Below are positions 8,420 through 27,384 of a stretch of DNA of 64,000 bases, in pieces (the stretch's first letter is position 1; the number at the start of each line of letters is the position of its first letter). Where the stretch lies: the IMG/VR virus record IMGVR_UViG_3300042540_001822, positions 124,001 through 188,000 of that record; one strand, written 5' to 3'. Under the pieces are notes generated by a model that had not been told where the DNA came from, did no database searches, and worked only from the letters and a program-made list of their open reading frames with translations. Position numbers and translations under genes: made by a program.

Positions 8420-9001
8420 TCAATTAGGATTAACAAGAAAATCAGGTTTTTTGTAATACTCCCATACTTCATCTAATTGTTTTGGGTCTTTCACCCACAT
8501 AATCCAATCATCTTTTTTAATTTCTTCCTCCAACACATCAATGTAAAATGTTTTCGGTGTAAATGGAAATCCTTTAATTTCCAAAATACTGCGAAATGGG
8601 TTTGTATTGTTGATAGCATCTTCTCGGGTCATATAAATAGTTCCCGACCAAGTTGTTCCATTAGGACATCTTTTGATAATAGCGTCATTATATGTAACCT
8701 TACCATCGTTATCCTTAAACAATCCACTTTCTCTTTTATTTTGATACCAGGGTTCACCTGCTATATCACTAATATCTCCCCACTCTTCATCTTTACCTGT
8801 AATAGGCCCCAGTGGTTTGTAGTTAGCTAATTTGTGAAATAACGATGCTACAATCGGGGCTGAACCACCTGAGTGTCCTTGCTTTGCGAAGACTTCCATT
8901 AGTTCCATAACCGCCTCTCCGATTGCTCCTCCATAGTCAGAATCTTCATCAAAGAAGCCTGCTAATTCTAATTCAAATTTTGCGTGTGATGTTGTGCTCA
9001 T
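8420..9001 (-). CDS. Conserved phage hypothetical protein (FAKQGHSGGSA motif)
   Basis: ORF track; GHSGxSA motif recognised from phage hypotheticals. Confidence 0.8.
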   Translation of the reverse strand: MSTTSHAKFELELAGFFDEDSDYGGAIGEAVMELMEVFAKQGHSGGSAPIVASLFHKLANYKPLGPITGKDEEWGDISDIAGEPWYQNKRESGLFKDNDGKVTYNDAIIKRCPNGTTWSGTIYMTREDAINNTNPFRSILEIKGFPFTPKTFYIDVLEEEIKKDDWIMWVKDPKQLDEVWEYYKKPDFLVNPN

Positions 9002-13877: not shown

Positions 13878-14390
13878 TTATTTCCAGTCAATTTTAGGAC
13901 AATACTTGTAATAGGTTGCTTTAACCATTTCAACAGTAATATTAGAACTTTTTTCTTCTTTCGGTAGATTTTTCCTCCCCCATTTTCTTTCTTTTCTTTC
14001 TTTTATTTTATCTTGGATGTATTCAATAAACCAAGCACAACCCCAAGTCAAACCTACCGCCCATACAAAAAAACCGTAAATAATTAAATTTTCTAAAATA
14101 GATCCTTTATGTGGTGTGTGCCAAAATAACATAATGGGACTGAGAGCTGCAATTAAAAGCAAAAGTATAAACCAAGAAATGAAACTTATCCAAATTCTAT
14201 TACCAAGTGATTCGTTATACGTATCTTTATCTATAATAACATAAGGAAGGGAAAAAATAAATAGTGGGATTGCGAATACATAAGCTATTACCAATTTCCA
14301 AAAGTATGGACATAAGTTGGTTGGAAGTTCACTTGTTCTGTAAAACCAACGGAAGAGTTTTGCTGAGATTGAGTTTTTGTTGAGTTTCAT
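13878..14390 (-). CDS. Multi-pass membrane protein (NLCPYFW; YYKYCPKIDW)
   Basis: Three hydrophobic segments. Confidence 0.8.
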   Translation of the reverse strand: MKLNKNSISAKLFRWFYRTSELPTNLCPYFWKLVIAYVFAIPLFIFSLPYVIIDKDTYNESLGNRIWISFISWFILLLLIAALSPIMLFWHTPHKGSILENLIIYGFFVWAVGLTWGCAWFIEYIQDKIKERKERKWGRKNLPKEEKSSNITVEMVKATYYKYCPKIDWK

Positions 14391-14761
14391 ACTTTTACAA
14401 GTTTAAATTTTTCACCACCAATTACAATTTCTTTACCTTCGCAAGATTTGGGTCGGTTGTCTTTGATTATACCTTTTGAATTCTCAAAGTAGATTAGATT
14501 ACCTTGAGAATCCCATTCCTGCTTTAACCAATACCCAGTTGAATCCTCAAAGTAGATTCTATTACCTTGAGAATCCCATTCCTTCTTTGCCCAATATTTC
14601 TTTGAATTCTCATAGTAGATTTCATTACCTTGAGAATCGTATTCACTCTTTACCCAACGTTTATTTGAATTCTCAAAGTAGATTTTTTTGCCATTCGTGT
14701 CTAGGATTACCAATGTACCATTGGTCTTGAAATCCCATTTAATTTGTTGTGCGATTGTCAT
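14387..14761 (-). CDS. Beta-repeat family member, 3 internal units, 124 aa
   Basis: xWxKxE(W/Y)DSQGNxIYxE(N/D)S repeats, YD/RHS-like. Confidence 0.9.
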   Translation of the reverse strand: MTIAQQIKWDFKTNGTLVILDTNGKKIYFENSNKRWVKSEYDSQGNEIYYENSKKYWAKKEWDSQGNRIYFEDSTGYWLKQEWDSQGNLIYFENSKGIIKDNRPKSCEGKEIVIGGEKFKLVKV

Positions 14762-15069
14762 ACTTTTACAAGTTTAAATTTTTCACCATCGATTTCTACT
14801 ACTTTATTTTCGCAAGATTTAGGTCGGTTGTCTATGATTTTACCATTTGAATTCTCATAGTAGATTCTATTACCTTGAGAATCCCATTCTCGTTTTGACC
14901 AATATCCATCTGAATCATGATAGTAGGTTTGGTTACCTTGAGAATCGTATTCACACTTTCCCCAATATCCATCTGAATTCTCATAGTAGATTCTATTACC
15001 ATTCTTGTCTTTAATTTCCAAGTAACCGTTGGTCTCAAAGTCCCAGTTGATTTGTTGTCCTATTGTCAT
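14758..15069 (-). CDS. Beta-repeat family member, 2 units, 103 aa
   Basis: Same family motifs. Confidence 0.9.
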   Translation of the reverse strand: MTIGQQINWDFETNGYLEIKDKNGNRIYYENSDGYWGKCEYDSQGNQTYYHDSDGYWSKREWDSQGNRIYYENSNGKIIDNRPKSCENKVVEIDGEKFKLVKV

Positions 15070-15314
15070 ACTTTTACAAGTTTAAATTTTTCACCATCGA
15101 TTTCTACTACTTTGTTTTCACAAGACTTGGGTCGGTTGTCTCTGATTACGCCATATGAATTCTCATAGTAGATTTCTTTTCCTTGGGAATCCCACTCCTT
15201 CTTTGACCAATGTCCATTTGAATTCTCCCAGTAGATTTCTTTACCATTCTTGTCTTTAATTTCCAAGTTACCGTTGGCCTTGAAATCCCATTTGATTTGT
15301 TGTGCGATTGTCAT
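15066..15314 (-). CDS. Beta-repeat family member, 1 unit, 82 aa
   Basis: Same family motifs. Confidence 0.9.
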   Translation of the reverse strand: MTIAQQIKWDFKANGNLEIKDKNGKEIYWENSNGHWSKKEWDSQGKEIYYENSYGVIRDNRPKSCENKVVEIDGEKFKLVKV

Positions 15315-15622
15315 ACTTTTACAAGTTTAAATTTTTCACCATCAATTACGATTTCTTTATTTTCACAAGGCTTGGGTCGGTTGTCTTTGATTACACCACG
15401 TGAATTCTCAAGGTAGATTTCATTCCCTTCAGAATCCCATTCCTCCTTTACCCAATCTCCCTTTGAATCCCCAGAGTAGATACAATAGCCATTAGAATCG
15501 TATTCTTGTTTTGTCCAATACCCATATGAAGCCTCTCGGTAGATTTCTTTACCATTCTTGTCTTTGATTACCAAGGAACCATTGGTTTCAAAGTCCCATT
15601 TGATTTGTTGTGCTATTGTCAT
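15311..15622 (-). CDS. Beta-repeat family member, 2 units, 103 aa
   Basis: Same family motifs. Confidence 0.9.
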   Translation of the reverse strand: MTIAQQIKWDFETNGSLVIKDKNGKEIYREASYGYWTKQEYDSNGYCIYSGDSKGDWVKEEWDSEGNEIYLENSRGVIKDNRPKPCENKEIVIDGEKFKLVKV

Positions 15623-16014
15623 ACTTTTACAAGTTTAAATTTTTCACCACCAATTACAATTTCTTTGTTTTCACAGGATTTGGGTCGGTAGTCTACGATT
15701 GCACCATCTGAATCCTCGTGGTAGATTATATTACCTTTAGAATCGTATTCCCACTTTCTCCAATCTCCCTTTGAATTCTCCCAGTAGATTAATTTACCTT
15801 GAGAATCGTATTCACACTTTACCCAAAATCCATCTGAATTCTCATAGTAGATTAGATTGCCTTGAGAATCCATTTCATACTTTCTCCAAGTCCCATGTGA
15901 ATCCTCAAAGTAGATTAGGTTGTCATTCTTGTCTCGGATTATCAAGTCACCATTGGTCTTGAAATCCCATTTGATTTGTCGTGCTATTGTTTCCATAATT
16001 TTTTTAATCTTCAA
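15619..16014 (-). CDS. Beta-repeat family member, 3 units (start possibly METIARQ)
   Basis: Same family motifs. Confidence 0.9.
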   Translation of the reverse strand: MKIKKIMETIARQIKWDFKTNGDLIIRDKNDNLIYFEDSHGTWRKYEMDSQGNLIYYENSDGFWVKCEYDSQGKLIYWENSKGDWRKWEYDSKGNIIYHEDSDGAIVDYRPKSCENKEIVIGGEKFKLVKV

Positions 16015-16540
16015 ACAGATTTTCTAAATATCGACACATTTCCCCGAGTTGATGAGCTTGTCCTTCAACAAATCCAAGACTAGTTAAGAAATGGTCATTT
16101 TCTTTTTTATACATGTCAAACATACGGCTACCAGTCATTTTAGAGTATTGAACATTAGCTATTCTATCACAAAGTTTAACAAACACAGCTTCTTTGAAGT
16201 TACGAATTCCCTCGTAGTATTTGTCATTTGCACGTTCCTTACGGTTCTTACCCTTTTCATTGGTACATGCATATATGATATCCGCTGTAAATAGTCCAAG
16301 ATTTTCCTTTACATCATTATAAGAAACTCTTGTGTCTTCGATTAAATCGTGACCGTATGCGGCTAGTAGAACCATATCTCTCCATGCTGTTTCTCCATCA
16401 TTTAAATTGGGGATTAATTCTATGAACTTCTCTGCCACCTTAGCAACCATTCGCAGATGGAACTCATAAGGCAAATATGCGTCGTACATATGGTTTGTAG
16501 ATTCGTGTTGCTTAAGAATCCATTTGATTTTTTCATTCAT
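16004..16540 (-). CDS. HD-domain hydrolase, RelA/SpoT hydrolase-like (SAH/Mesh1-type)
   Basis: PYEFHLRMV, AAYGHDLIEDT, VKLCDRIANV. Confidence 0.85.
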   Translation of the reverse strand: MNEKIKWILKQHESTNHMYDAYLPYEFHLRMVAKVAEKFIELIPNLNDGETAWRDMVLLAAYGHDLIEDTRVSYNDVKENLGLFTADIIYACTNEKGKNRKERANDKYYEGIRNFKEAVFVKLCDRIANVQYSKMTGSRMFDMYKKENDHFLTSLGFVEGQAHQLGEMCRYLENLFED

Positions 16541-16593
16541 ATATTCGATTTCTTTTGTGAAATTAAAATTAAGGTAGGACGTTATTATTATTG

Positions 16594-18036
16594 TTAACCC
16601 TCTGATTTTTTGCTACTAGCCAAACCGTTCAACATTGATAAAATGTTTTTACCCTCCTCAGTTTGTTTTAGTCCTTCGAGTAAACCGTTAATTTGTGAAG
16701 CTCCTTTGGACGTGAAAAGGTCTGAAAGCTTTCCAATGCCGGATTGTACGTCTCCACTGTTAATGAGAAGCTTGAGATCAGCTGCGGATAAGGCTTTTGC
16801 CATAGATTCGTACTGTGCAACCCCGACCACTTGGCTCACCTCCACCTCTTTTACCCGAATCAAGTACTCTTGATAAGGTTTGTTTTCCCCGATCTCTTTG
16901 GCCAAAGTGGTCTGTGCAGAAACGCTGGCCAATTCCATCGCCTTTCTTGATTCAGCCTCTGATATACCTTTGGCCTTAATAACATCTGCCTCTGCAGAAC
17001 CAACAGTTTTGGTAGCCTCTGCCTCTTTACGTTTTGCTTCCAGTGCAGCTGATGCTTCTGTTTCAATACGGTATTTTTCGGCCATAGCACGAATTTCTGT
17101 CTTCTGTTTTTCTTGTTCTGCAGTGATGATCTCACGTTCTCTGTCGATCTCGGCTTGCTTGACTTGATTTACCTTTATAACTTCCATCTCTTGCTCGGCA
17201 GTCATTCTTTGTGATTTTGCGATCTCCGAGATAGATTCTTGTTCTGCAATTCCTGTGCGTTTCTTTGACTCTGCTTTGGCTATTCCGATGGCCTGTTGAG
17301 ATTGAGCCTGTGCCTCCCCTGCGATCTTTTCTGTTTCTGCAGTGGTGACGTCAATTTCTTTTCTGGCCTCTAGCTCTGCTTGTTTTGCCATCTTGTTGTT
17401 TTTCGCAACTTCAGTTCTTGATTCCATGTCTATGGCTGACATTCTTTTTGCCATGATTTGGTGGATGACCTGGGATCCGTCTGCGTCTCTTACGTCCATC
17501 AATTCAATGCTTTTGATAGCTTCTACCCCCCAGTTTTGCAAATCATTGTTGACCGCCTCTGTGAACTGCTTACCGAAAATGGATCTTTCCTCCATGATTT
17601 CTTCCAATTTTGATTTGGCCAAAATCGAACGGACTGCTCCTTGAACTACATTTTCTAACTGTCCTTTAAGTTCTTCAAATGATTCAACCTTTTGTGCTGC
17701 AACGTTTGTGTCAGATATATGAAAGAAAGCCTTTACGTCAACCACGAAAGGAACACGATCTTTATCATAGGCCTCATATCGTTTTAAATCGATGTCGAAG
17801 TTGCTAACTGGCAAAACACGTTTTGATACACCGAAGAAAGGAAGCCAACTTGGCCATTCATAGTATACGTTGGATTGTTTATTGGTTCCATATGAGACCG
17901 TCTGTTTTCCACGTTGAACAATGTGTACCACGTTGGTCGGCACGATTCGGCGAAGTGAAACAACGTAAATCAGAATGGAAATCCCGATGATGGTTGGTAA
18001 CGATAGAGCTACCATGGAGAGAATTGATAGAAACAT
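16594..18036 (-). CDS. SPFH/band-7 (flotillin-like) membrane protein
   Basis: N-terminal TM; VPTNVVHIV; DKDRVPFVVDVKAFFHI; GAVRSILA; long AE-rich coiled coil. Confidence 0.9.
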   Translation of the reverse strand: MFLSILSMVALSLPTIIGISILIYVVSLRRIVPTNVVHIVQRGKQTVSYGTNKQSNVYYEWPSWLPFFGVSKRVLPVSNFDIDLKRYEAYDKDRVPFVVDVKAFFHISDTNVAAQKVESFEELKGQLENVVQGAVRSILAKSKLEEIMEERSIFGKQFTEAVNNDLQNWGVEAIKSIELMDVRDADGSQVIHQIMAKRMSAIDMESRTEVAKNNKMAKQAELEARKEIDVTTAETEKIAGEAQAQSQQAIGIAKAESKKRTGIAEQESISEIAKSQRMTAEQEMEVIKVNQVKQAEIDREREIITAEQEKQKTEIRAMAEKYRIETEASAALEAKRKEAEATKTVGSAEADVIKAKGISEAESRKAMELASVSAQTTLAKEIGENKPYQEYLIRVKEVEVSQVVGVAQYESMAKALSAADLKLLINSGDVQSGIGKLSDLFTSKGASQINGLLEGLKQTEEGKNILSMLNGLASSKKSEG

Positions 18037-18091
18037 TTTTTTTGGGTTTAAATTGGTTTATGAAATTGGTTTTTGGATTTTAAAATTTAAA

Positions 18092-18739
18092 TTAAGAAAG
18101 AGAATTTGGAAGGTATAACAGAGTTGGATTCTTCTTTTGAATGTCGATATCTGGATACTTTTTTTTAAATTCCATCACATCAAACTTTTTTGTTATTAAA
18201 TGATGGCCGTTTTTCGTTGGAATAATTGCTTCTATCTTCGGACCCACTTTATGACCGATAGGAAATCCAGCTTCATCAAAGTCAACTTTGGTAATGGGTT
18301 GACAGGAATACTCCAGATGTGCCATCATAAGGGGGGATGGTGTTTGTGATCCATCTACATCCACAATCCATCTTTTCTCATGAGTTTGCATTTGACCAAC
18401 AACAGAATCAAAAAGATTTTTTTGGTTTGGTTGACCATTTCGAATTCTTTCAGCCAAGGAAACCATCATGTTTAAAGAAACATCTTTGTGATTTTGTTTC
18501 TGAACATGAATATAAGCTCTTGCTTTGAACATCTCGCACAATTGTTTTATCTCTTCATATCTTTGGTCGAGATGGTCAACACTTTCTATACAGTAGGTCT
18601 TGATTGTTCTGACCGACTGGTGGTTGTCTTTTTCACCCTCTGGTTGGTCTTTCTTCCTTTTGAAAACATACAACATGTAGAAATCTCCAGATTTCTCAAA
18701 ATTAAGAAGAGGTTTGATTAGAGGAAGATTGTCTATCAT
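18092..18739 (-). CDS. Prim-pol / archaeo-eukaryotic primase-like protein (start moved to MIDNLP)
   Basis: WIVDVD (hhhDhD) and IPTKNGHHLI (sxH) match AEP motifs I and II; canonical promoter just upstream of 18739. Confidence 0.6.
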   Translation of the reverse strand: MIDNLPLIKPLLNFEKSGDFYMLYVFKRKKDQPEGEKDNHQSVRTIKTYCIESVDHLDQRYEEIKQLCEMFKARAYIHVQKQNHKDVSLNMMVSLAERIRNGQPNQKNLFDSVVGQMQTHEKRWIVDVDGSQTPSPLMMAHLEYSCQPITKVDFDEAGFPIGHKVGPKIEAIIPTKNGHHLITKKFDVMEFKKKYPDIDIQKKNPTLLYLPNSLS

Positions 18740-18756
18740 TTGCTGTAAGTTGTAGC

Positions 18757-18789
18757 AAATATACGAAAAAGGATTCGATAAAAAACAAA
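18757..18789 (-). promoter_or_regulatory. Bacteroidota-type housekeeping sigma promoter (-33 TTTG / -7 TAnnTTTG)
   Basis: Minus strand TTTG (18789-18786), 21-nt spacer, TATATTTG (18764-18757). Confidence 0.6.
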
Positions 18790-18817
18790 AACCCAAATTT
18801 TTTTTGGGTTTTTTGTT
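18783..18817 (-). terminator. Hairpin, probable intrinsic terminator downstream of the tRNA-like RNA
   Basis: aaaaacccaaa-ttttt-tttgggttttt inverted repeat with A/T tails. Confidence 0.65.
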
Positions 18818-18824
18818 ATCTTTG

Positions 18825-18946
18825 CCAGAAGGGCGGGGTTCGAACCCGCGGCTCGCCATTACCTCGACCTTAGCGTGCATTCGATCTCGACTTTGCTTGC
18901 GCTTTCAGTGGGTTTCCTTGTAGCACGTTGTTACCCACACCTCCTG
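18825..18946 (-). ncRNA. 122-nt tRNA-like non-coding RNA without a canonical anticodon arm
   Basis: 7-bp acceptor stem CAGGAGG/CCTTCTG; T-arm GCGGG-TTCGAAC-CCCGC; TGGGT/ACCCA stem at D-arm position; GC-rich intergenic island; no CCA. Confidence 0.7.
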
Positions 18947-18950
18947 TTTT

Positions 18951-19178
18951 TTAGTCGTCGTTTCTTTCTCTGATTGAACCTGATGTTGAATCCGGAGGGA
19001 TTGCACCCCAAATTTTTGCAAAATTTTTGTCTTCTATTACACGGGCAATGAAGTCAGATTTTGAAAGCGGATCATTGGTTGTCATCATCCAGGCGTTGTA
19101 ATATTTCTGGTAAACAAGATCAATGTTAGATTTTTCTTCTCCGAAAGAAATTTGTTGTTTTTGTGAATTTGAAATCAT
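18951..19178 (-). CDS. Small protein with an MNNEK-like core
   Basis: VYQKYY...LSKSDFIARVIEDKNFAKIWG aligns with VYERYW...LTKQDFINKCKTDSEFSERWG. Confidence 0.7.
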   Translation of the reverse strand: MISNSQKQQISFGEEKSNIDLVYQKYYNAWMMTTNDPLSKSDFIARVIEDKNFAKIWGAIPPDSTSGSIRERNDD

Positions 19179-19191
19179 AAGAATTTTTTAT

Positions 19192-19929
19192 TTAAGAAAT
19201 TTCTCCTACAGATAGTTTTCCTTTAACATCAATAAGAAATTTACCAATTTCTAAAGCATCTGCCAAATAATATTTTCCACCCATATACTTTCTCATGTGA
19301 CCAAGATTTAAATCCTTAACTTGGGTGTGACCCACAATTTGAATAAAATTCTTTTTGATCCAATAATTTGAATCTGACCTCCTCTTTTTATTCGAAGCTA
19401 GTAGAGCGGGTATACGAATCCAAACAGGAGATTGTGTTACATCATTACCGTAAGAATTCCAACCAGAGAAACAAAAAGCTTTAGGTCGGAATACGAACAT
19501 TTCGTTTATCTTTTCAACCAGATTCCAACAATCCCAGCCATTTATTCCAAATGTATTTTCCATCCAAATGTGGCTGACCCCTGCGTGTGTACAAAGATAT
19601 CTATCGAAAGAGAATGACATTTGGAATTGAGGTAAGTTTTCGGACAGAACTGTGGAAATATCGAATTGTAAACCCGGTTGAAACCCTGAGTATGTTTCAC
19701 CAACGTGCATATAGTGAAGGTCGTGATTACCTACGAGTAAAACTACTTCCTTGTCACTTGACTTTTTAAATTCAACTATTTCCTTGAAGTTGTGTAATTG
19801 GTCTATGCCAGGAATATCAAAAGAATCAAAGTAATCCCCTAAGAATACAATTCTATCTGGATCCTCCTGCTGAATAATTTTTTTCCAGATGGATCTTCCG
19901 TGAATATCACCTATAAAAACTGTTTTCAT
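19192..19929 (-). CDS. Calcineurin-like metallophosphoesterase
   Basis: GDIHG, GDYFD, GNHD, THAG, GHT. Confidence 0.92.
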   Translation of the reverse strand: MKTVFIGDIHGRSIWKKIIQQEDPDRIVFLGDYFDSFDIPGIDQLHNFKEIVEFKKSSDKEVVLLVGNHDLHYMHVGETYSGFQPGLQFDISTVLSENLPQFQMSFSFDRYLCTHAGVSHIWMENTFGINGWDCWNLVEKINEMFVFRPKAFCFSGWNSYGNDVTQSPVWIRIPALLASNKKRRSDSNYWIKKNFIQIVGHTQVKDLNLGHMRKYMGGKYYLADALEIGKFLIDVKGKLSVGEIS

Positions 19930-19970
19930 TTAATTGTAAATGTGAATAATTATGGTTCTGTTATTTCTCA

Positions 19971-20429
19971 TTATGATTCTATTAGTTGTGCAACGATGTT
20001 CTTAACAGTTCCAATATCTGCTCTTCCTTGGAATCTTTTATTGAACTCACCGATAGTTTTTCCTTGAAGAGCTTGCGGATTTTTGATTGTATCGCTGAAT
20101 CCTTTCATGATCTCGATAAGAGAATCTGCGATTTCTTGGTCTGACATTTGAGCAGGCATGTACCTTCTTAAGACACACGCTTCATCACATTCTTTGCGGG
20201 CAAGTTCATCTCGTCCAGCATCCTCAAAGATCTTTTGAGATTCTTCTCTCTGCTTGATGGCTTTCACCAAAACTTTAACGACTTCTTCATCTTTTAAGTT
20301 TTGCGAAAACCCCGCTTTCTCGGCCTCGGTGATTTTTGCTTTTAAGCTGCTTAAAGCAGACTTCGCATTTTCATCTTTGGCTTTCATAGCCACCACGAAA
20401 TCTTTTTGAATTTGTTCTTTGAGTGTCAT
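19971..20429 (-). CDS. GatB/YqeY-domain protein
   Basis: MTLKEQIQKDFVVAMKAKD...IKQREES...GRDELA.KE...YMP.QMS. Confidence 0.9.
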   Translation of the reverse strand: MTLKEQIQKDFVVAMKAKDENAKSALSSLKAKITEAEKAGFSQNLKDEEVVKVLVKAIKQREESQKIFEDAGRDELARKECDEACVLRRYMPAQMSDQEIADSLIEIMKGFSDTIKNPQALQGKTIGEFNKRFQGRADIGTVKNIVAQLIES

Positions 20430-20430
20430 A

Positions 20431-21531
20431 CTATTTTTCGTTTTTAAGAAGGAACTTGTTGCTAATTGCCTTGAAAGAAATGGTAGTGTCCATACTACGA
20501 ATGACCACTCCTTCCCGTTCAGTATTGGGATTTAGAACTGATTTTCCTTCTGCTTGTTGTAGAAGTTCTTCGATGGTGTCTGGTAGAAGAAACTCAATCC
20601 CGAGAATTGGCACGGTTTCGAATCCCAATAACTTCATTATGTTGATAAAATCTCGAAGGTTTAGTCTTTCCTGCTTATCAATGTCAAAAGCATTGTAGAA
20701 ACGAACGGTATGACCTTTGAGCTTGTAAGGATTCTTTTGAATTCCTTCTCCGATCAATTCTCCTTGGATGCAAATGTTAAGACCGGTTGCTAGTAACTTT
20801 TTCTTAATGTCCATTTCACGAGCTACTTTCCAGAAAGTGTTTTCCTGCTTCGGTCTTTCCAAGCCATCTTCACACATTACAGTGCCAGGTACAAAATCTC
20901 CGGGGTCAGCAAGTTCCAGGTTGCGAGAGCAGACCCCAAATTCACCGTCCTTGATGTAGAATGTAGCAGAACTCCCATCCAACTTTTCAGTTGCATAGAA
21001 CTGGTGTTTGCTGGAGAACTTCCATTCCTCGTATTCCTTGGTTAGATTCTGCACCCTCTCTTCATCGGTCTTACGGATAAAAGATGGGAAGTAGCCTTTG
21101 ACCTTGCCGGCCAGCTCGGCAGGAACTGGCGGCTCGTACTTGACAATGTTCAACATTTCTGTAACATCTAGTCCTTCGAACCAGCCCATATCCAGGTTAG
21201 GAGTGCTACGTTTGTAGATCGCATAGGAATCTGCCAATGGTAGGATGAGACCTTGTGATACTTGCCCGCGAAGTTTGATCGTCTTCAATCGAAATCCTTC
21301 AGATCCGTCAGACATTTTTTTATACGAGCTCTTCCGAAGAAACTCAAACTCTGGCTCAATTGGCAAGTAAGAGTCGATCTCGCAATAGACTACAAGATCT
21401 CCCTCTTTGTGGCCTACGTTTTTGCCAACCACCACTTGCCAGGAATTGATGATTGCCAGTTCAATGGAGTCTGCTCCTTCGATTGGTCGAATCTCACGGA
21501 TTCTTTGTATGCTTGCTAATTTTCTTTCCAT
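20431..21531 (-). CDS. ATP-dependent RNA ligase (DRB0094/Rnl5-like) with N-terminal OB-like domain
   Basis: RKLASIQRI...ADSIE; TEKLDGSS (motif I), QGELIG, FYNAFD, REGVV, FKAISNKFL. Confidence 0.92.
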   Translation of the reverse strand: MERKLASIQRIREIRPIEGADSIELAIINSWQVVVGKNVGHKEGDLVVYCEIDSYLPIEPEFEFLRKSSYKKMSDGSEGFRLKTIKLRGQVSQGLILPLADSYAIYKRSTPNLDMGWFEGLDVTEMLNIVKYEPPVPAELAGKVKGYFPSFIRKTDEERVQNLTKEYEEWKFSSKHQFYATEKLDGSSATFYIKDGEFGVCSRNLELADPGDFVPGTVMCEDGLERPKQENTFWKVAREMDIKKKLLATGLNICIQGELIGEGIQKNPYKLKGHTVRFYNAFDIDKQERLNLRDFINIMKLLGFETVPILGIEFLLPDTIEELLQQAEGKSVLNPNTEREGVVIRSMDTTISFKAISNKFLLKNEK

Positions 21532-21533
21532 GG

Positions 21534-21791
21534 TTAAATTGGATTTGTTAGTTGTCTTGTTACAATTCGGCTATCTTCATCAGGACGGGACTCGATTCCC
21601 AAAGAAACGGACTTCCCGTAACATTTGGCAACAACAATTGGGTCTCCGTATATGGGGTCAAAATCTGATCTAAAGGAGACGAACCCGGCACCATCACATT
21701 TTCGATTATATCCTACCATATCCTTGTGTTGAATTGCCGCAGAAAAAACTATTGCGCTTCCGTCCACAATTACGTATTTTGCTTCGTACAT
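21534..21791 (-). CDS. Hypothetical protein
   Basis: ORF track. Confidence 0.75.
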   Translation of the reverse strand: MYEAKYVIVDGSAIVFSAAIQHKDMVGYNRKCDGAGFVSFRSDFDPIYGDPIVVAKCYGKSVSLGIESRPDEDSRIVTRQLTNPI

Positions 21792-21867
21792 AAATATTTA
21801 AATTTTATTAGAACAACAATAATTTCATATTCTTATTGAACGCTAAATTAATAATTTATTTCCAATT

Positions 21868-22281
21868 TCATTCGAATTTTTCCCGAAAATTGTGAATTTT
21901 TTCAAAGTAAAATTGTACAGGTGTACCAGTTTCAATAACCAATCCATAACGTTTGGCAAACTTGTATTGGGTGCTATATTCATTGAGAGAATTCACGAAT
22001 TGCTTGATATTTGACCTGAACTCTTCCACAGTAAATGAGTTCTTTTGGATATTACAACTGGGGCAGGCTGGATTAAAATTTTCTAAAATTTCATTTTCTG
22101 GATTCCTACATGTTCCCTTGTTTACAAACTTACCTTTTTTTCTGTCCCATTTACTATCTCTGACAATTGGTTGAACATGGTCTGCATGCCAACTTTTTGT
22201 TAAATTACATCCACAATATGCACATTTCCCGCCATACTTCTCAAAAATTTTGATCCTATCAGATTTTTTCATCCATTTCAA
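21868..22281 (-). CDS. HNH endonuclease
   Basis: CAYCG...DHVQP...NPACPSCNIQK. Confidence 0.9.
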   Translation of the reverse strand: MKWMKKSDRIKIFEKYGGKCAYCGCNLTKSWHADHVQPIVRDSKWDRKKGKFVNKGTCRNPENEILENFNPACPSCNIQKNSFTVEEFRSNIKQFVNSLNEYSTQYKFAKRYGLVIETGTPVQFYFEKIHNFREKFE

Positions 22282-22633
22282 TCTGTCTGATTTTGTGAAT
22301 GGCCTCCATAGGCATTGTCTTCACACAATATTCAACGATATGTTTGAATTCTTCCATAGGAAAAACTAGAAGTTCTAAGGAGAAGACTTTTGAATCTCGA
22401 TGTTCTTCTACCTGTAGGTGTTTACTAACCTTACCTACGATCTGTTCGGACAATCGTTGGGTTATTTCTTTGTATACAATTTTCTCAAAATCCACAGACG
22501 AATGTTCCAAGATATCTTTGGACAAAGTATGTTGACATTTGTGATGTGCATTTTCTAACATTAACGCTTGTTTGGCGGTTTGTAGAGATCTGACGAGTTC
22601 TCTAGAAACATGATCGAAATCTTGTGTGTTCAT
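22259..22633 (-). CDS. Hypothetical protein
   Basis: ORF track. Confidence 0.75.
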   Translation of the reverse strand: MNTQDFDHVSRELVRSLQTAKQALMLENAHHKCQHTLSKDILEHSSVDFEKIVYKEITQRLSEQIVGKVSKHLQVEEHRDSKVFSLELLVFPMEEFKHIVEYCVKTMPMEAIHKIRQIEMDEKI

Positions 22634-22637
22634 TTTT

Positions 22638-23339
22638 TTAGGAATTTATTTGAACGTCAAATATGGTATTTTTGTGGTAATCTGATACATAACAACCCAT
22701 AACGAGCAAAAATGTTTTTTCTCCGGGTATTCCAAAAAAACACCTCGAATCATTGGCGGAAAAGATTTCCAATTCAGATATTCCAACGAACAAAAGATTA
22801 TCAATCAATTCCCTTGTAGTCTTCATAGATAAGTAAACTCCATCCACATTAAAGTAATGATTTTCTGGTAAGTGGTAATGTCCAGTTTCCTCCGTGCCTG
22901 AGGGTATTTCACCTTCACCATCACATTTTTCACAATCAGATTCCGAACCACAACAGTCACACTCAATAGTTCCAAATCCATCACACTCAGAGCATTCTAT
23001 GTATTTTTCCGAAAATTCTGGAATTAATTTGATTTTTTCAAAAACTTCTTCAAAATCCTTGATTTTAATTCTACCGATAGGTCGGGGAACACCCTCGTAA
23101 AATTCGGAGAATTTCTCAACAACTGGAAGTGCCTTGATCCCTTCTGTATCCGAATAAATGTATCTGTTTTCAAAATTTTTATAATCAGGATCGTAGGTCC
23201 AAATTAATTTGTAAGAATCCGTAGCACAGACCCATCCATCGTCAAAACAGGTTGGTTTCAACATTTGTGTTCTAAGGATGCTATCCTTAGAACACCAGGA
23301 TTCAATGAACGTTTGATATTTTGGATGTTCTCTAAGCAT
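22638..23339 (-). CDS. Hypothetical protein with a DnaJ-type zinc-finger insert
   Basis: CSECDGFG...CDCCG...CEKCDGEG. Confidence 0.8.
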   Translation of the reverse strand: MLREHPKYQTFIESWCSKDSILRTQMLKPTCFDDGWVCATDSYKLIWTYDPDYKNFENRYIYSDTEGIKALPVVEKFSEFYEGVPRPIGRIKIKDFEEVFEKIKLIPEFSEKYIECSECDGFGTIECDCCGSESDCEKCDGEGEIPSGTEETGHYHLPENHYFNVDGVYLSMKTTRELIDNLLFVGISELEIFSANDSRCFFGIPGEKTFLLVMGCYVSDYHKNTIFDVQINS

Positions 23340-23535
23340 TATTTTTTTTATTTAGAAAAGAAACTAAGAAAAAAATACCGAAGAAAATGGTAAAACCCCA
23401 TCGGTGAGGTTCAATAGGACTATTGAACTTAAACTGACTAGTTGCGTAGGCGCCTAGCATTAAACTACAAATAAAGAATAGGAACAAGAAGAAGTATTTT
23501 TTCATTGGTTTTTTTTACAAATATACAGATAAATC

Positions 23536-23991
23536 TCAAACAAAGTGTGGAATATTCACTCGAACACAAGATTGTGGTTGACCCTCGTTCATCCAAAAAT
23601 TGTTAATGTAGCCCATAATGTTGGCGGATCCAATTGGGTTGGCCGAATGGGTGTAAACTAAGGGAAAAACGATACCAGATGATTTTTTTTCTGACCTACT
23701 TTCTTGAGTAATGTAATTGTCAAGATAGTGATTGACCAACCACTTAGCACAATCCATTCCCGTCTTTTCAAGGATGTTATTGTAATCCAATTTGTAGTTT
23801 GGACTCACGTTATTGAAATATTCATTCATCGCTGTATCATCCAAATCGTGATCCAAAGAAATAAGTTCAATATTTTCCAAACCCGTATTCGTGACAGTTT
23901 CCACGAATTGTTCGTAGTTCCTAACAACCACCCAATTTTCATCTTTGGGTGTCCTAACGTCATCTAAGTAAATTTGTTTTTTCATTTTCAA
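23536..23991 (-). CDS. Cyclic-phosphate-processing receiver-like domain protein
   Basis: IYLDDVRTP, ISLDHDL, GMDCAKWL, HSANPIG. Confidence 0.8.
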   Translation of the reverse strand: MKMKKQIYLDDVRTPKDENWVVVRNYEQFVETVTNTGLENIELISLDHDLDDTAMNEYFNNVSPNYKLDYNNILEKTGMDCAKWLVNHYLDNYITQESRSEKKSSGIVFPLVYTHSANPIGSANIMGYINNFWMNEGQPQSCVRVNIPHFV

Positions 23992-23997
23992 TTTTTT

Positions 23998-24240
23998 TTA
24001 AAGCCACTTCACGACGGATCCCCAAACGGAATCTATAGAGTTAAAGAAAACTCGGTGATTTCCATTTCCTAGGGTTTGGGGTATGAACTCGAATTTAAAA
24101 AACCCCCTTATATAGAGGAATCCGATTTGTTTGTGCATATAGAAACCTCCCTGAGTGAATTGTGGGGTTTCAATTTCAACATATGATCGACCTAGGATAA
24201 AATCGTACAATTTAGAAAAAAACAGCAAGAATAATTTCAT
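23998..24240 (-). CDS. Hypothetical protein
   Basis: ORF track. Confidence 0.6.
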   Translation of the reverse strand: MKLFLLFFSKLYDFILGRSYVEIETPQFTQGGFYMHKQIGFLYIRGFFKFEFIPQTLGNGNHRVFFNSIDSVWGSVVKWL

Positions 24241-24485
24241 AGATTGATGTAAGTTGTTTTTTTGATGCTCTCTCCTATTTTTTCTTTTTGATTTTCTTTA
24301 AAAAGTTCAATTACATCTTCGGCTTGTTTTTGGGTGGGGTATATGTGTCTAGACTTATCACTTGTTGATGTTGTGTGAGAATCCGAAATTATATTTTCCC
24401 ATGATTCCCATTCCCAAAATTTAACTTGTGGAGTATATCCCATCTCGCCAGAGTTTTTTTCCTCTACCATAATTCTGTATTTCAT
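24237..24485 (-). CDS. Hypothetical protein
   Basis: ORF track. Confidence 0.7.
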   Translation of the reverse strand: MKYRIMVEEKNSGEMGYTPQVKFWEWESWENIISDSHTTSTSDKSRHIYPTQKQAEDVIELFKENQKEKIGESIKKTTYINL

Positions 24486-25117
24486 TGTTTAGTTTGTTTG
24501 ATTAAAGTTCTATTCAATTTTCCATAGTTTGATTCACCGTCAAAAGCTCTACCAATACGGTACAAATGTTTAGGTGATAATCCAAAGTAACCATCACAAT
24601 GATAAAATTTATCCATTTGTTCTGGAAGCATATCAGAGTCATCATCTAAAATTGCATAATCCTCAACTTCAGGATTTTTATCTAACCATTGCTGTATTTC
24701 TTCTCCCCTCATACCAAACCCCCTTCCAGTAATCCCAACAAAAGTTCCCTCATTAAATCCAAAATGTACCAAAGCATCTTCCCACCACTCTGGAATTAAT
24801 TCTTTTTTCTTACCAAAATGATGTCTCCAAACAGATGAAACACAAATTTTAGTTCCAGTTTCATTACAAAAATTAGAAAGCCATTTCCATTTTTGTGGAC
24901 AAGTTTCTCCAATCAACCTTTTAAGCTGAAATTCGTAGGTGTAGTAAATATCGGGTGTTTTGTGATTTGCATAACTCACAGGTTTTGATTTGATACCTAA
25001 AAACTTTCTGATTAAGTAGTAGTAAGTCCTGGGTTTCAACCACCTTTTTTTGTGTCGGTTCTCGTAAAAAACTTCAGAGTTCATAACCCCATCAATATCT
25101 AAAAATATAACTTTCAT
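24482..25117 (-). CDS. HAD phosphatase of the Swiss-Army-knife RNA-repair type
   Basis: VIFLDIDGVMN, ICVSSVWR, RGEEIQQWL, YAILDDDSDM. Confidence 0.82.
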   Translation of the reverse strand: MKVIFLDIDGVMNSEVFYENRHKKRWLKPRTYYYLIRKFLGIKSKPVSYANHKTPDIYYTYEFQLKRLIGETCPQKWKWLSNFCNETGTKICVSSVWRHHFGKKKELIPEWWEDALVHFGFNEGTFVGITGRGFGMRGEEIQQWLDKNPEVEDYAILDDDSDMLPEQMDKFYHCDGYFGLSPKHLYRIGRAFDGESNYGKLNRTLIKQTKQ

Positions 25118-25425
25118 ACTTTTACAAGTTTAAAATTTTCGCCATCGATTAGGATTTCTTTGTTTTCGCAAGACTTAGGTCGGTTGTCTATGATTAGACC
25201 ACCTGAATCCTCAAAGTAGATTTTATTACCTTGAGAATCGTATTCTCGTTTAGCCCAAACTCCATCTGAATCCTCAACGTAGATTAGATTGCCTTGAGAA
25301 TCATATTCACACTTTTCCCAATATCCATTTAAATGCTCATAATAGATTTCATTACCATTCTTGTCTCGGATTACCAAGAGACCATTGGTCTTGAAGTTCC
25401 ATTTAATTTTTTGTGCGATTGTCAT
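25114..25425 (-). CDS. Beta-repeat family member, 103 aa
   Basis: Family motifs. Confidence 0.9.
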   Translation of the reverse strand: MTIAQKIKWNFKTNGLLVIRDKNGNEIYYEHLNGYWEKCEYDSQGNLIYVEDSDGVWAKREYDSQGNKIYFEDSGGLIIDNRPKSCENKEILIDGENFKLVKV

Positions 25426-25874
25426 ACTTTCACGAGTTTAAATTTTTCACCACCAATTAGGATTTCTTTGTTTTCACAAGGCTTGGGTCGGTAGTCTATG
25501 ATTTCACCATATGAATTCTCATAGTAGATTACATTACCATTCTTGTCTTTGATTTCCTTTAAGTTACCGTTGGCCTTGAAGTTCCATTTGACACTGGCCT
25601 TGAAGTTCCATTTGGCACAGGGTTTAGGTCGATCGTCTCTGATTTGGCCAACTGAATTTTCAAAGTAGATTACATTGCCTTGAGAATCCCATTCTCGTTT
25701 TGACCAATACCCATTTGAATCCTCCAAGTAGATTTGATTACCTTGAGAATCCCGTTCATACTTTTCCCAAAACCTATTTGAATCCTCAAAGTAGATTAGA
25801 TTATCATTCTTGTCTTGGATGTTCAAGCATCCATTGGTCTCAAAATCCCATTTGATTTGTTGTGCTATTGTCAT
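25422..25874 (-). CDS. Beta-repeat family member, chimeric, 150 aa (partial second copy fused in frame)
   Basis: RPKPCAKWNFKASVKWNFKANGNL...; 24-bp tandem repeat at 25571-25618. Confidence 0.88.
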   Translation of the reverse strand: MTIAQQIKWDFETNGCLNIQDKNDNLIYFEDSNRFWEKYERDSQGNQIYLEDSNGYWSKREWDSQGNVIYFENSVGQIRDDRPKPCAKWNFKASVKWNFKANGNLKEIKDKNGNVIYYENSYGEIIDYRPKPCENKEILIGGEKFKLVKV

Positions 25875-26185
25875 ACTTTCACGAGTTTAAATTTTTCACC
25901 ATCGATTTCTACTACTTTGTTTTCACAGGGTTTGGGTCGTTTGTCTTTGATTACACCTTTTGAATTCTCATAGTAGATTTCTTTACCTTGAGAATCCCAT
26001 TCTTGTTTTTCCCAATATCCATCTGAATTCTCATAGTAGATTAATTTTTCTTCAGAATTGTATTCATGCCTGTCCCAACCTCCCGTATTTTCAAAGTAGA
26101 TTAGATTACCATTCTTGTCTCGGATTTCCAAGACACCGTTGGTCTTGAAATCCCATTTGATTTGTTGTGCTATTGTCTGTATCAT
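25871..26185 (-). CDS. Beta-repeat family member, 104 aa
   Basis: Family motifs. Confidence 0.9.
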   Translation of the reverse strand: MIQTIAQQIKWDFKTNGVLEIRDKNGNLIYFENTGGWDRHEYNSEEKLIYYENSDGYWEKQEWDSQGKEIYYENSKGVIKDKRPKPCENKVVEIDGEKFKLVKV

Positions 26186-26523
26186 ACTTTTACAAGTTTA
26201 TATTTTCCACCAGGTGCAAACATAGAAAAAAGACCTAAGCCTTTAAATTCTACTACTTTACCTTCACAGGGCTTGGGTCGGCTGTCTATGATTTCACCAT
26301 ATGAATTCTCATAGTAGATTACTTTTCCTTCAGAATCCAGTTCCCACTTTCTCCAAGTCCCATGTGAATACTCCAAGTAGATCAATTTACCTTGAGAATC
26401 CCATTCATACTTTTCCCAAACTCCATCTGAATTCTCCAGGTAGATTGGTTTACCATTCTTGTCTCGGATTACCAAGAGACCATTGGTCTTGAAATCCCAT
26501 TTGATTTGCTGTGCTATCGTCAT
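26182..26523 (-). CDS. Beta-repeat family member, 113 aa, with C-cap insertion (GLGLFSMFAP)
   Basis: Family motifs. Confidence 0.9.
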   Translation of the reverse strand: MTIAQQIKWDFKTNGLLVIRDKNGKPIYLENSDGVWEKYEWDSQGKLIYLEYSHGTWRKWELDSEGKVIYYENSYGEIIDSRPKPCEGKVVEFKGLGLFSMFAPGGKYKLVKV

Positions 26524-26828
26524 ACTTTCACGAGTTTAAATTTTTCACCACCAAATTCTACTATCTTACCTTCACAAGACTTAGGTCGTTTGTCTTTAAT
26601 TAGACCATCTGAATTCTCATAATAGATTTCATTGCCTTCAGAATCGTATTCATGCTTTCTCCAATATCCCATTGAATTCTCACAGTAGATTTCTTTGCCT
26701 TTAGAATTCCGTTCCCACTTTGCCCAATATCCATCTAAATCCTCAAAGTAGATTATTTTACCATTCTTGTCTAGGATATCCAAGTCACCATTAGTGAAGT
26801 CCCATTTGATTTGTTGTGCTATTGTCAT
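26520..26828 (-). CDS. Beta-repeat family member, 102 aa
   Basis: Family motifs. Confidence 0.9.
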   Translation of the reverse strand: MTIAQQIKWDFTNGDLDILDKNGKIIYFEDLDGYWAKWERNSKGKEIYCENSMGYWRKHEYDSEGNEIYYENSDGLIKDKRPKSCEGKIVEFGGEKFKLVKV

Positions 26829-27076
26829 ACTTTCACTAGTTTATATTTTTCACCTTCAAATTCTACTATCTTACCTTCACAGGGCTTGGGTCGTTTGTCT
26901 ATGATTCTACCAAATGAATTCTCCCTGTAGATTAGATTGCCTTGAGAATCGTATTCGCTCTTTTCCCAAACCCTATTTGAATCCTCCCAGTAGATTAGTT
27001 TACCATTATTGTCTTTGATTCTCAATTCATCATTGGTCCTGAAATCCCATTTGATTTGTTGTGCTACTGTTTTCAT
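26825..27076 (-). CDS. Beta-repeat family member, 83 aa, 1 unit
   Basis: Family motifs. Confidence 0.9.
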   Translation of the reverse strand: MKTVAQQIKWDFRTNDELRIKDNNGKLIYWEDSNRVWEKSEYDSQGNLIYRENSFGRIIDKRPKPCEGKIVEFEGEKYKLVKV

Positions 27077-27384
27077 ACTTTTACAAGTTTAAATTTTTCA
27101 CCACCGATTAGGATTTCTTTGTTTTCACAAGATTTGGGTCGTTTGTCTGCGATTACACCATTTGAATCCTCACAGTAGATTACATTACCTTGAGAATCGA
27201 ATTCATACTTTGCCCAAAGTCCTTTTGAATCCTCCATGTAGATTAGATTGTCTTGAGAATCGTATTCACGCTTTGCCCAAAATCCACTTGAAGTCTCAAA
27301 GTAGATTAGGGAATCATTCTTGTCTCGGATTTGCAAGACGCCATTGGTCTTGAAATCCCACTTGATTTGTTGTGCTATTGTCAT
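27073..27384 (-). CDS. Beta-repeat family member, 103 aa
   Basis: Family motifs. Confidence 0.9.
   Translation of the reverse strand: MTIAQQIKWDFKTNGVLQIRDKNDSLIYFETSSGFWAKREYDSQDNLIYMEDSKGLWAKYEFDSQGNVIYCEDSNGVIADKRPKSCENKEILIGGEKFKLVKV

Follow-up and report, generated by a model that had tools for sequence, protein, structure and literature searches.

Arrays of mini YD-repeat genes in a freshwater jumbo-size phage: a codon pattern probably shaped by diversifying selection, recombination and descent

The gene arrays and the proteins they encode

The window (the whole stretch of DNA analysed, 64,000 nucleotides) consists of bases 124001-188000 of the linear 219,475-bp virus record IMGVR_UViG_3300042540_001822 (GC 0.36; estimated 88% complete), which represents a jumbo-size phage of roughly 220 kb from freshwater (lake water). 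Two tandem arrays of small paralogous genes lie in the window, all on the minus strand: array A (window 14387-15996) with five genes and 11 repeat units, and array B (window 25114-27384) with seven genes and 13 units. The units are 21 codons long, and at some of their codons the first two bases vary from unit to unit while the third is fixed, a pattern that is probably the outcome of diversifying selection and recombination in a family of paralogs whose third bases were inherited by lineage, not of targeted mutagenesis. A tblastn search of the whole genome located a third array outside the window (genome 59436-60985; five genes) and a lone diverged copy, likewise outside (near genome 47906-48142; 43% identity, with a different C-terminal part). 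The family total in the genome is 17-18 genes and 34 units.

Array A gene 1 (15619..15996) encodes 125 residues from its ATG, comprising an N-cap, three full YD-type units and a C tail; its open reading frame reaches an upstream TTG at 16014. It is followed by gene 2 (15311..15622; 103 residues, two units), gene 3 (15066..15314; 82 residues, one unit), gene 4 (14758..15069; 103 residues, two units), the product of which was used for fold prediction, and gene 5 (14387..14761; 124 residues, three units), the C tail of which carries a conversion tract in one population variant. Array B begins with gene 1 (27073..27384; 103 residues, two units), gene 2 (26825..27076; 83 residues, one unit) and gene 3 (26520..26828; 102 residues, two units), and continues with gene 4 (26182..26523; 113 residues, two units), which has an insertion in its C tail, and gene 5 (25871..26185; 104 residues, two units), the first unit of which lacks one codon. 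Gene 6 (25422..25874; 150 residues) arose by fusion from two family genes, one with two units and the other shorter, and the join carries a 24-nt tandem duplication (25571-25618; KWNFKASV KWNFKANG). Gene 7 (25114..25425; 103 residues, two units) completes the array.

Every array junction reads GTATGA, and since each stop codon thereby overlaps the next start by 4 nt, the genes of an array are probably translated as one coupled string. The third gene of the third array (genome 59989-60300) has lost its ATG, its junction being GTATAAAAACAATCG in place of GTATGACAATCG; it may be a pseudogene, or another start may be used. Antisense open frames of 62-84 codons recur on the plus strand of the window (14476-14730, 15771-15962, 26301-26492 and 27162-27353); they result from the repeat sequence itself and are not genes in their own right.

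The family proteins are 82-150 residues long, have no signal peptide and consist of three parts: an N-cap (consensus MTIAQQIKWDFKTNG.L.I.DKNG), one to three full 21-residue units (consensus IY.ENS.G.W.K.E[YW]DSQGN.) and a C tail (consensus I.D.RPK.CE.K..I.GEKFKLVKV). AlphaFold modelled the product of array A gene 4 from a 55-sequence alignment as a meander of beta-hairpins, with a predicted local distance difference test score (pLDDT) of 93.4. Foldseek matched this model in the PDB to Rhs effectors of type VI secretion systems, Tc toxin BC components and teneurins (entries 7q97, 8uxt, 8qja, 8h8a and 9ifo; root-mean-square deviation 1.3-1.7 Å across 60-63 residues), and also to the single-layer sheet of OspA. 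A profile of the family matched RhsA (7q97) in the PDB with E = 7e-7, and the sequence of array A gene 1, read from its upstream TTG (15619-16014), matched TIGR01643 (YD_repeat_2x) with 26.7 bits (cut-off 15.8; E = 5e-6). TIGR01643 did not match the other three paralogs compared with it at E <= 1, a Pfam scan of four paralogs returned nothing significant, and RHS_repeat was unmatched by single sequences. To judge from the profile matches and the predicted structure, the units are YD/Rhs-type beta-hairpin repeats and the proteins are members of the YD repeat superfamily.

YD/Rhs proteins (TIGR01643, PF05593), among them Rhs effectors, Tc toxin BC components and teneurins, have in common with this family a beta-hairpin repeat of about 21 residues with a Y-D..G-N motif, and the superposition of the model on Rhs shells (1.4-1.7 Å for 63 residues) spans three repeats. 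They differ in being 600 to >2000 residues long and forming a closed cocoon round a toxin domain, with autoproteolysis; the family proteins have at most three full units plus caps, a C tail that is a 25-residue hairpin and no toxin or protease part, and they are encoded in phage tandem arrays with hypervariable positions. The family shares the YD/Rhs fold and is not an Rhs toxin. The hairpin repeats that bind choline or glucan (CW_binding_1, Choline_bind_3, TIGR04035) are likewise aromatic-rich and about 20 residues long, and the family gives weak matches to repeat regions of glucansucrases and, as the sole match in PHROGs, to the repeat region of an endolysin. That identity was rejected: all matches fall far under the curated cut-offs (Choline_bind_3 10.6 bits against 27; TIGR04035 18.7 against 147.7) and the YD models fit better.

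More than 1140 relatives were found; they are unnamed or hypothetical except for a few called 'YD repeat-containing' by the Joint Genome Institute (JGI), and every cluster of look-alikes in the ESM Atlas is labelled viral. A literature search found no description of a mini YD-repeat family, which appears to be undescribed so far. When the HD-phosphohydrolase gene adjacent to an array was used as bait, 60 related loci were retrieved, and none has the family beside the HD-phosphohydrolase except for a weak match in locus L053; by this comparison of sequences the arrays are not syntenic across HD-phosphohydrolase-related loci.

Third bases and selection at the variable codons

Units were anchored on their invariant TGG codon, which gave 24 in the window and 34 in the genome. 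The codon before TGG (column 9) is NNT in 24/24 window units and 34/34 genome units, and in the window it encodes Y, F, V, D, T, R, H, G or L; the codon after TGG (column 11) is NNA in 22/24 and 32/34, the exceptions being GCT, in array B gene 7, and GAC, in the first unit of array B gene 5. A preliminary description of the window had reported the same 24 units, counts and exceptions, and its statement that the neighbouring constant codons ATC and TAC keep their C endings was also borne out. Column 21 is NNA in 22/24 window units and column 5 is NNT in 23/24. If the codon usage of a further 286 phage genes is applied to the amino acids present, NNT is expected in 13.0/24 (P = 5e-8) and NNA in 10.9/24 (P = 1e-7), and nulls that also take the next codon (TGG or AAR) into account give P = 5e-6 and 5e-7, all four values treating as independent units that are not. 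Valine is encoded by GTT at column 9 (3/3) and by GTA at columns 11 and 21 (9/9). Because the codon-usage and context nulls are rejected and the valine codons are column-specific, the pattern is real and codon bias is insufficient alone to produce it.

The scaffold residues of the unit are I1, Y2, E4, S6, G8, W10, K12, E14, D16, S17 and G19; columns 3, 9, 11, 13, 15 and 21 are hypervariable and columns 5 and 7 semi-variable. The idea that retention of the third base is special to the variable codons was not supported. Constant codons depart from codon usage to an even greater degree. The constant codons TAC, GAG, TCA, GAA, GAT, TCT and CAA are fixed equally, constant ATC is found in 32/34 units although the phage encodes isoleucine as ATC only 22% of the time, and 12% of all three-column sets match or exceed the third-base conservation of columns 9, 11 and 21, whereas the third base is not kept at hypervariable columns 3, 13 and 15. 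Across 73 other phage loci, which supply 193 distinct units, third bases number T150/C36/G5/A2 at column 9, A96/C42/T39/G16 at column 11 and A117/G61/T11/C4 at column 21, and scaffold codons are mixed as well (ATT 67/ATC 56, GAG 101/GAA 85, AAA 92/AAG 92, TCN mixed). A table of third bases by locus for 10 other phage arrays shows that the letter differs by lineage: column 21 is NNG in L095 (10/11), L116 (8/8), L117 (6/6) and L100 (5/5), column 9 is NNC in L144 (7/9), L111 and L122, and column 11 is NNC in 22/35 units of L110, with parallel lineage-specific states at scaffold codons. Retention of the wobble base at constant codons, its loss at columns 3, 13 and 15, the mixed wider family and the per-lineage letters thus identify it as a consequence of descent, not a property of variable codons; codon bias is the wrong null for the NNT/NNA pattern and shared descent is the right one. 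Tyrosine codons across 59 phage loci are predominantly TAC at column 2 (TAC 167/TAT 21) and column 15 (TAC 112/TAT 45), predominantly TAT at column 9 (TAT 65/TAC 8) and even at column 3, a column-specific choice that would fit selection for translational accuracy at conserved residues.

Substitutions were counted by the Nei-Gojobori method over 33 in-register units. The scaffold columns have a proportion of synonymous differences (pS) of 0.29 and of nonsynonymous differences (pN) of 0.035, for a ratio of nonsynonymous to synonymous rates (omega, or dN/dS) of about 0.1. At columns 3, 9, 11, 13, 15 and 21, pN is 0.54, near saturation, and pS for all columns is about 0.25-0.29. Over 300 replicates of random disjoint pairings the median omega at these columns is 3.1 (2.3-4.4), and the nonsynonymous excess is significant in 300/300 (Fisher median P = 4e-9, maximum 1.7e-4), which fits positive diversifying selection on the hypervariable codons, as far as counts of sequence differences can indicate. 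A contrast of nearest unit pairs was discarded in favour of the random pairings, as it has about 10 silent sites, picks noise and biases pS downward.

Stability of the arrays, recombination and the search for a mutator

The arrays were compared between samples on assembled contigs. The exact product of array A gene 4 was found on about 20 contigs, and array A is carried by nine loci from other metagenome samples. The array with its flanks (2663 nt, 13878-16540) is 100% identical in six of the nine and has one mismatch in two more; the ninth (L002) has nine mismatches, all within 14396-14432, that turn the C tail of array A gene 5 from KEIVIGG into KIVEIDG. Because the new tail resembles the tails KVVEIDG and KIVEFGG of other paralogs, the change is attributed to a gene-conversion tract. 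No array A change in the nine assemblies falls at columns 9, 11 or 21. Array B is present in 20 runs, all of lake or freshwater origin, that belong to 16 studies, and the main pieces of its contigs from runs of 2016, 2020, 2024 and 2025 are without differences. Its variants come mostly from a co-occurring strain in one run (X6) and lie chiefly in the N-cap and C tail, where they are often synonymous; none in the contigs of the four runs lies at column 9 or 11.

Three joints in run X6 connect separated parts of array B: a 63-nt duplication in gene B5 (26018>25959 plus 3 nt), a net 63-nt loss in gene B1 (27186>27259, with 9 nt between) and a junction between two array B genes (26902>25199). They indicate gain and loss of units, although with shorter sides of just 22-38 nt they are suggestive only. 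A sister strain, L148, from a sample that also contains this phage, has a flank of 97.4% nucleotide identity over 2.1 kb, its flanking proteins being 95% (HAD), 97.5% (the product of an 80-codon gene) and 100% (cREC_REC) identical, whereas its array is only 76-80% identical to array B. The L148 array is a mosaic with exact segments from genes A2 (115 nt), A4 (79 nt), B2 (127 nt) and B3 (65 and 56 nt), the two B3 segments sitting in two different L148 genes. Because this mosaic combines segments of A and B, segments move between arrays 10-90 kb apart. Inside this genome paralogs share exact stretches of no more than 48 nt, the longest of them all lying in the N-cap or C tail.

The whole 219,475-bp record was searched for a reverse transcriptase and a template repeat, a check that the preliminary description had proposed. 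A six-frame search for RVT_1 gave no candidate in the record (estimated 88% complete), the controls giving matches, and no family-like genomic unit with A-rich codons at the variable sites was found; eight genomic pattern matches for a template-like unit proved to be unrelated sequence. Many adenines of the units never vary, and mutagenesis of A could not give rise to NNA columns. The earlier judgement that this is not a classical diversity-generating retroelement (DGR) therefore stands, whereas the alternative of targeted diversification is not supported: the arrays, compared as contigs, are identical or nearly so over independent samples from 2016-2025, with the flagged codons unchanged.

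Explanations of the codon pattern and possible functions of the family

The explanation judged probable is that the NNT/NNA pattern arose in a paralog family by diversifying selection and recombination, the third base being inherited by lineage. Arrays A and B, the third array and the lone copy are tandem paralogs of one phage gene family, and their units would have recently descended from, or been homogenised to, one unit type, such that nearly all third positions keep the ancestral letter. Positive diversifying selection would have substituted the first two bases of the hypervariable codons again and again (dN/dS about 3, with dN close to saturation). Column 9 tolerates chiefly residues with NNY codons (Y, F, H and D), which rules out a purine as their third base, and AT pressure would favour T there. 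The resulting diversity would be re-assorted by gain and loss of 63-nt units, gene fusion, gene conversion and ectopic recombination among arrays, while the scaffold residues remained under purifying selection. The preliminary description had offered diversifying selection with homogenisation by gene conversion as one of its two readings, and the elevated dN/dS, the conversion tract, the mosaic genes and the per-lineage silent states agree with it.

Four other explanations were weighed. Genome-wide codon bias or the context of neighbouring bases might yield NNT in front of TGG and NNA in front of AAR: the phage has an AT-rich genome, with T at 34% and A at 33% of third positions, its Y, F, D and H codons end in T in 53-72% of cases, and column 9 of the wider family has T in 150/193 units, near the bias expectation for NNY-coded residues. 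The preliminary description would have yielded to this explanation had bias alone reproduced the pattern; the observed 24 and 22 are rejected by the codon-usage null and still by the context nulls, the choice among valine codons changes with the column, the constant codons ATC and TAC oppose the bias, and in other phages these columns are fixed for C or G. As sole cause, bias or context is largely refuted and very improbable. Somewhat less improbable, though still unlikely, is that the third bases and the silent sites of the scaffold are held by a constraint at the nucleotide level, such as mRNA structure, translational accuracy or homology for recombination. Silent variability is indeed uneven, serine TCA and TCT being nearly invariant while glycine codons vary, and the tyrosine codons are chosen by column over 59 loci, in the manner given above; other lineages, however, carry C or G at columns 11 and 21, and most silent sites, including those of the GAG/GAA and AAA/AAG codons counted above, are mixed in the wider family.

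A neutral explanation, in which the variable positions are unconstrained and the third base is fixed merely because the family is young, shares its element of descent with the preferred explanation and gains from the imprecision of pairwise dN/dS on short recombining repeats. It would require an omega of about 1 where about 3 was found, pN (0.54) exceeds pS in every one of the random pairings, even the weakest of them being significant, and column 9 is confined to a subset of residues, so that this explanation is unlikely, if a little less so than a nucleotide-level constraint. The least probable of the four, with hardly any credit left to it, is targeted hypermutation, by a DGR-like system or one of a new kind, that rewrites the first two bases of chosen codons. 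Mutagenesis of AAY codons by a DGR varies positions 1 and 2 while position 3 stays fixed, which is the outcome seen here, and the hypervariable codons look saturated even between units with identical scaffolds. Against hypermutation stand not only the missing RVT_1 match and template-like unit in the 219 kb, the many invariant adenines and the NNA columns that A mutagenesis cannot produce, but also the number of targets (34 in 17 genes, unlike any DGR), the stability of the sequences over nine assemblies and the runs of 2016-2025, and the nature of the differences between strains, which are recombination tracts and 63-nt steps instead of point changes at flagged codons.

With respect to known systems, the variable proteins of DGRs likewise concentrate their variation in the first two bases of a small number of surface codons while the scaffold stays constant, and likewise occur in phage genomes. 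The family differs from them in its many targets, its want of adenine specificity and the stability of its populations over years; neither a reverse transcriptase (in the 88%-complete record), nor a template repeat, nor differences in variable regions between near-identical genomes (compared as contigs) were found. The marks of a multigene family were all found, namely dN/dS >1 at a subset of codons, conversion and mosaics together with change in copy number, and lineage-specific silent sites. The mechanism is of a known kind, in which diversifying selection and gene conversion act together on a multigene family. Comparable cases include multigene families of the major histocompatibility complex (MHC) type, repeat-protein families of poxviruses and giant viruses, and the hypervariable positions of leucine-rich repeat (LRR) receptors. 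The esaG immunity genes of type VII secretion systems also form strings of non-identical tandem paralogs (PMC9484751). Tandem arrays of this kind, shaped by recombination and diversifying selection, resemble the family in their strings of non-identical paralogs, recombination between copies, strain-variable copy number and content, and variable contacts on a conserved framework; the family differs in its mini YD-repeat fold, its freshwater jumbo-size phage carrier and its three dispersed arrays that exchange segments.

The function of the family may be considered in light of its structure and neighbourhood. Along the strands, W10, K12, E14, Y2 and E4 alternate with variable columns 11, 13, 15 and 3, and columns 7 and 9 lie in a turn; by this alternation the variable residues would form one exposed binding face opposite a conserved ladder face. 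Between arrays A and B, all on the minus strand, are genes for a Band_7/SPFH protein with a long coiled tail (16594-18036), a metallophosphoesterase (19192-19929), an RNA ligase (20431-21531), an HNH endonuclease (21868-22281) and a cREC_REC cyclic-phosphate receiver protein (23536-23991), as well as a YqeY-like gene (within 16594-24000). Downstream of array A by 5.4 kb, also on the minus strand, a gene at 8420-9001 encodes a 193-residue protein that matches Pfam Tad3, an inhibitor of type I Thoeris (E = 1.9e-36, 124.9 bits). The genes of 16594-24000 look like a neighbourhood of RNA repair and counter-defence; a megablast search of 14 kb against GenBank phages returned zero matches. Given that the proteins lack a signal peptide, combine an unvarying N-cap and C tail with a presumed variable face, differ in content between strains and lie in what looks like a counter-defence neighbourhood, they may be tentatively regarded as a putative repertoire of intracellular binders for variable proteins of the host or of competitors, and counter-defence is a plausible target. 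More speculatively still, the three arrays might constitute a germline repertoire of mini YD-repeat binders, each with a shared handle (the N-cap and C tail) and a differing recognition face, directed against proteins of the host or of rival phages (defence systems, for example) and renewed by the shuffling of segments between arrays.

Several points weigh against these interpretations. The dN/dS values come from pairwise counting on units that are short, recombining and non-independent, not from a site model partitioned for recombination, and synonymous rates are very uneven among columns (pS 0 to 0.92), such that some silent sites may be constrained, the column-specific tyrosine codons of the 59 loci being an example of this. 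With the record about 88% complete, a reverse transcriptase could lie in the absent part, and comparison at the level of contigs leaves room for low-frequency variants within samples. Strand alternation is the one basis for the idea of a single variable face, as the neighbourhood (Tad3, RNA ligase, cREC_REC) is for that of counter-defence.

The codon pattern needs no new mutational mechanism, being the expected footprint of a family expanded or homogenised by lineage and exposed to diversifying selection, and this knowledge should help to tell the footprint of such families from that of DGR-like systems in later scans. The family has >1100 unnamed members in the protein database, and all leads to its origin (fetched contigs and Atlas clusters) are viral. 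That array content differs between strains with 97% identical flanks marks the arrays as an arms-race locus. If the proteins do bind host defence or surface components, they would provide a natural binder scaffold in the form of a flat beta-sheet and a handle on the conflict between lake phages and their hosts, and if the arrays are a germline repertoire of binders, their renewal by recombination would parallel the diversification achieved by DGRs, and the proteins would amount to a new class by which phages interact with their hosts.

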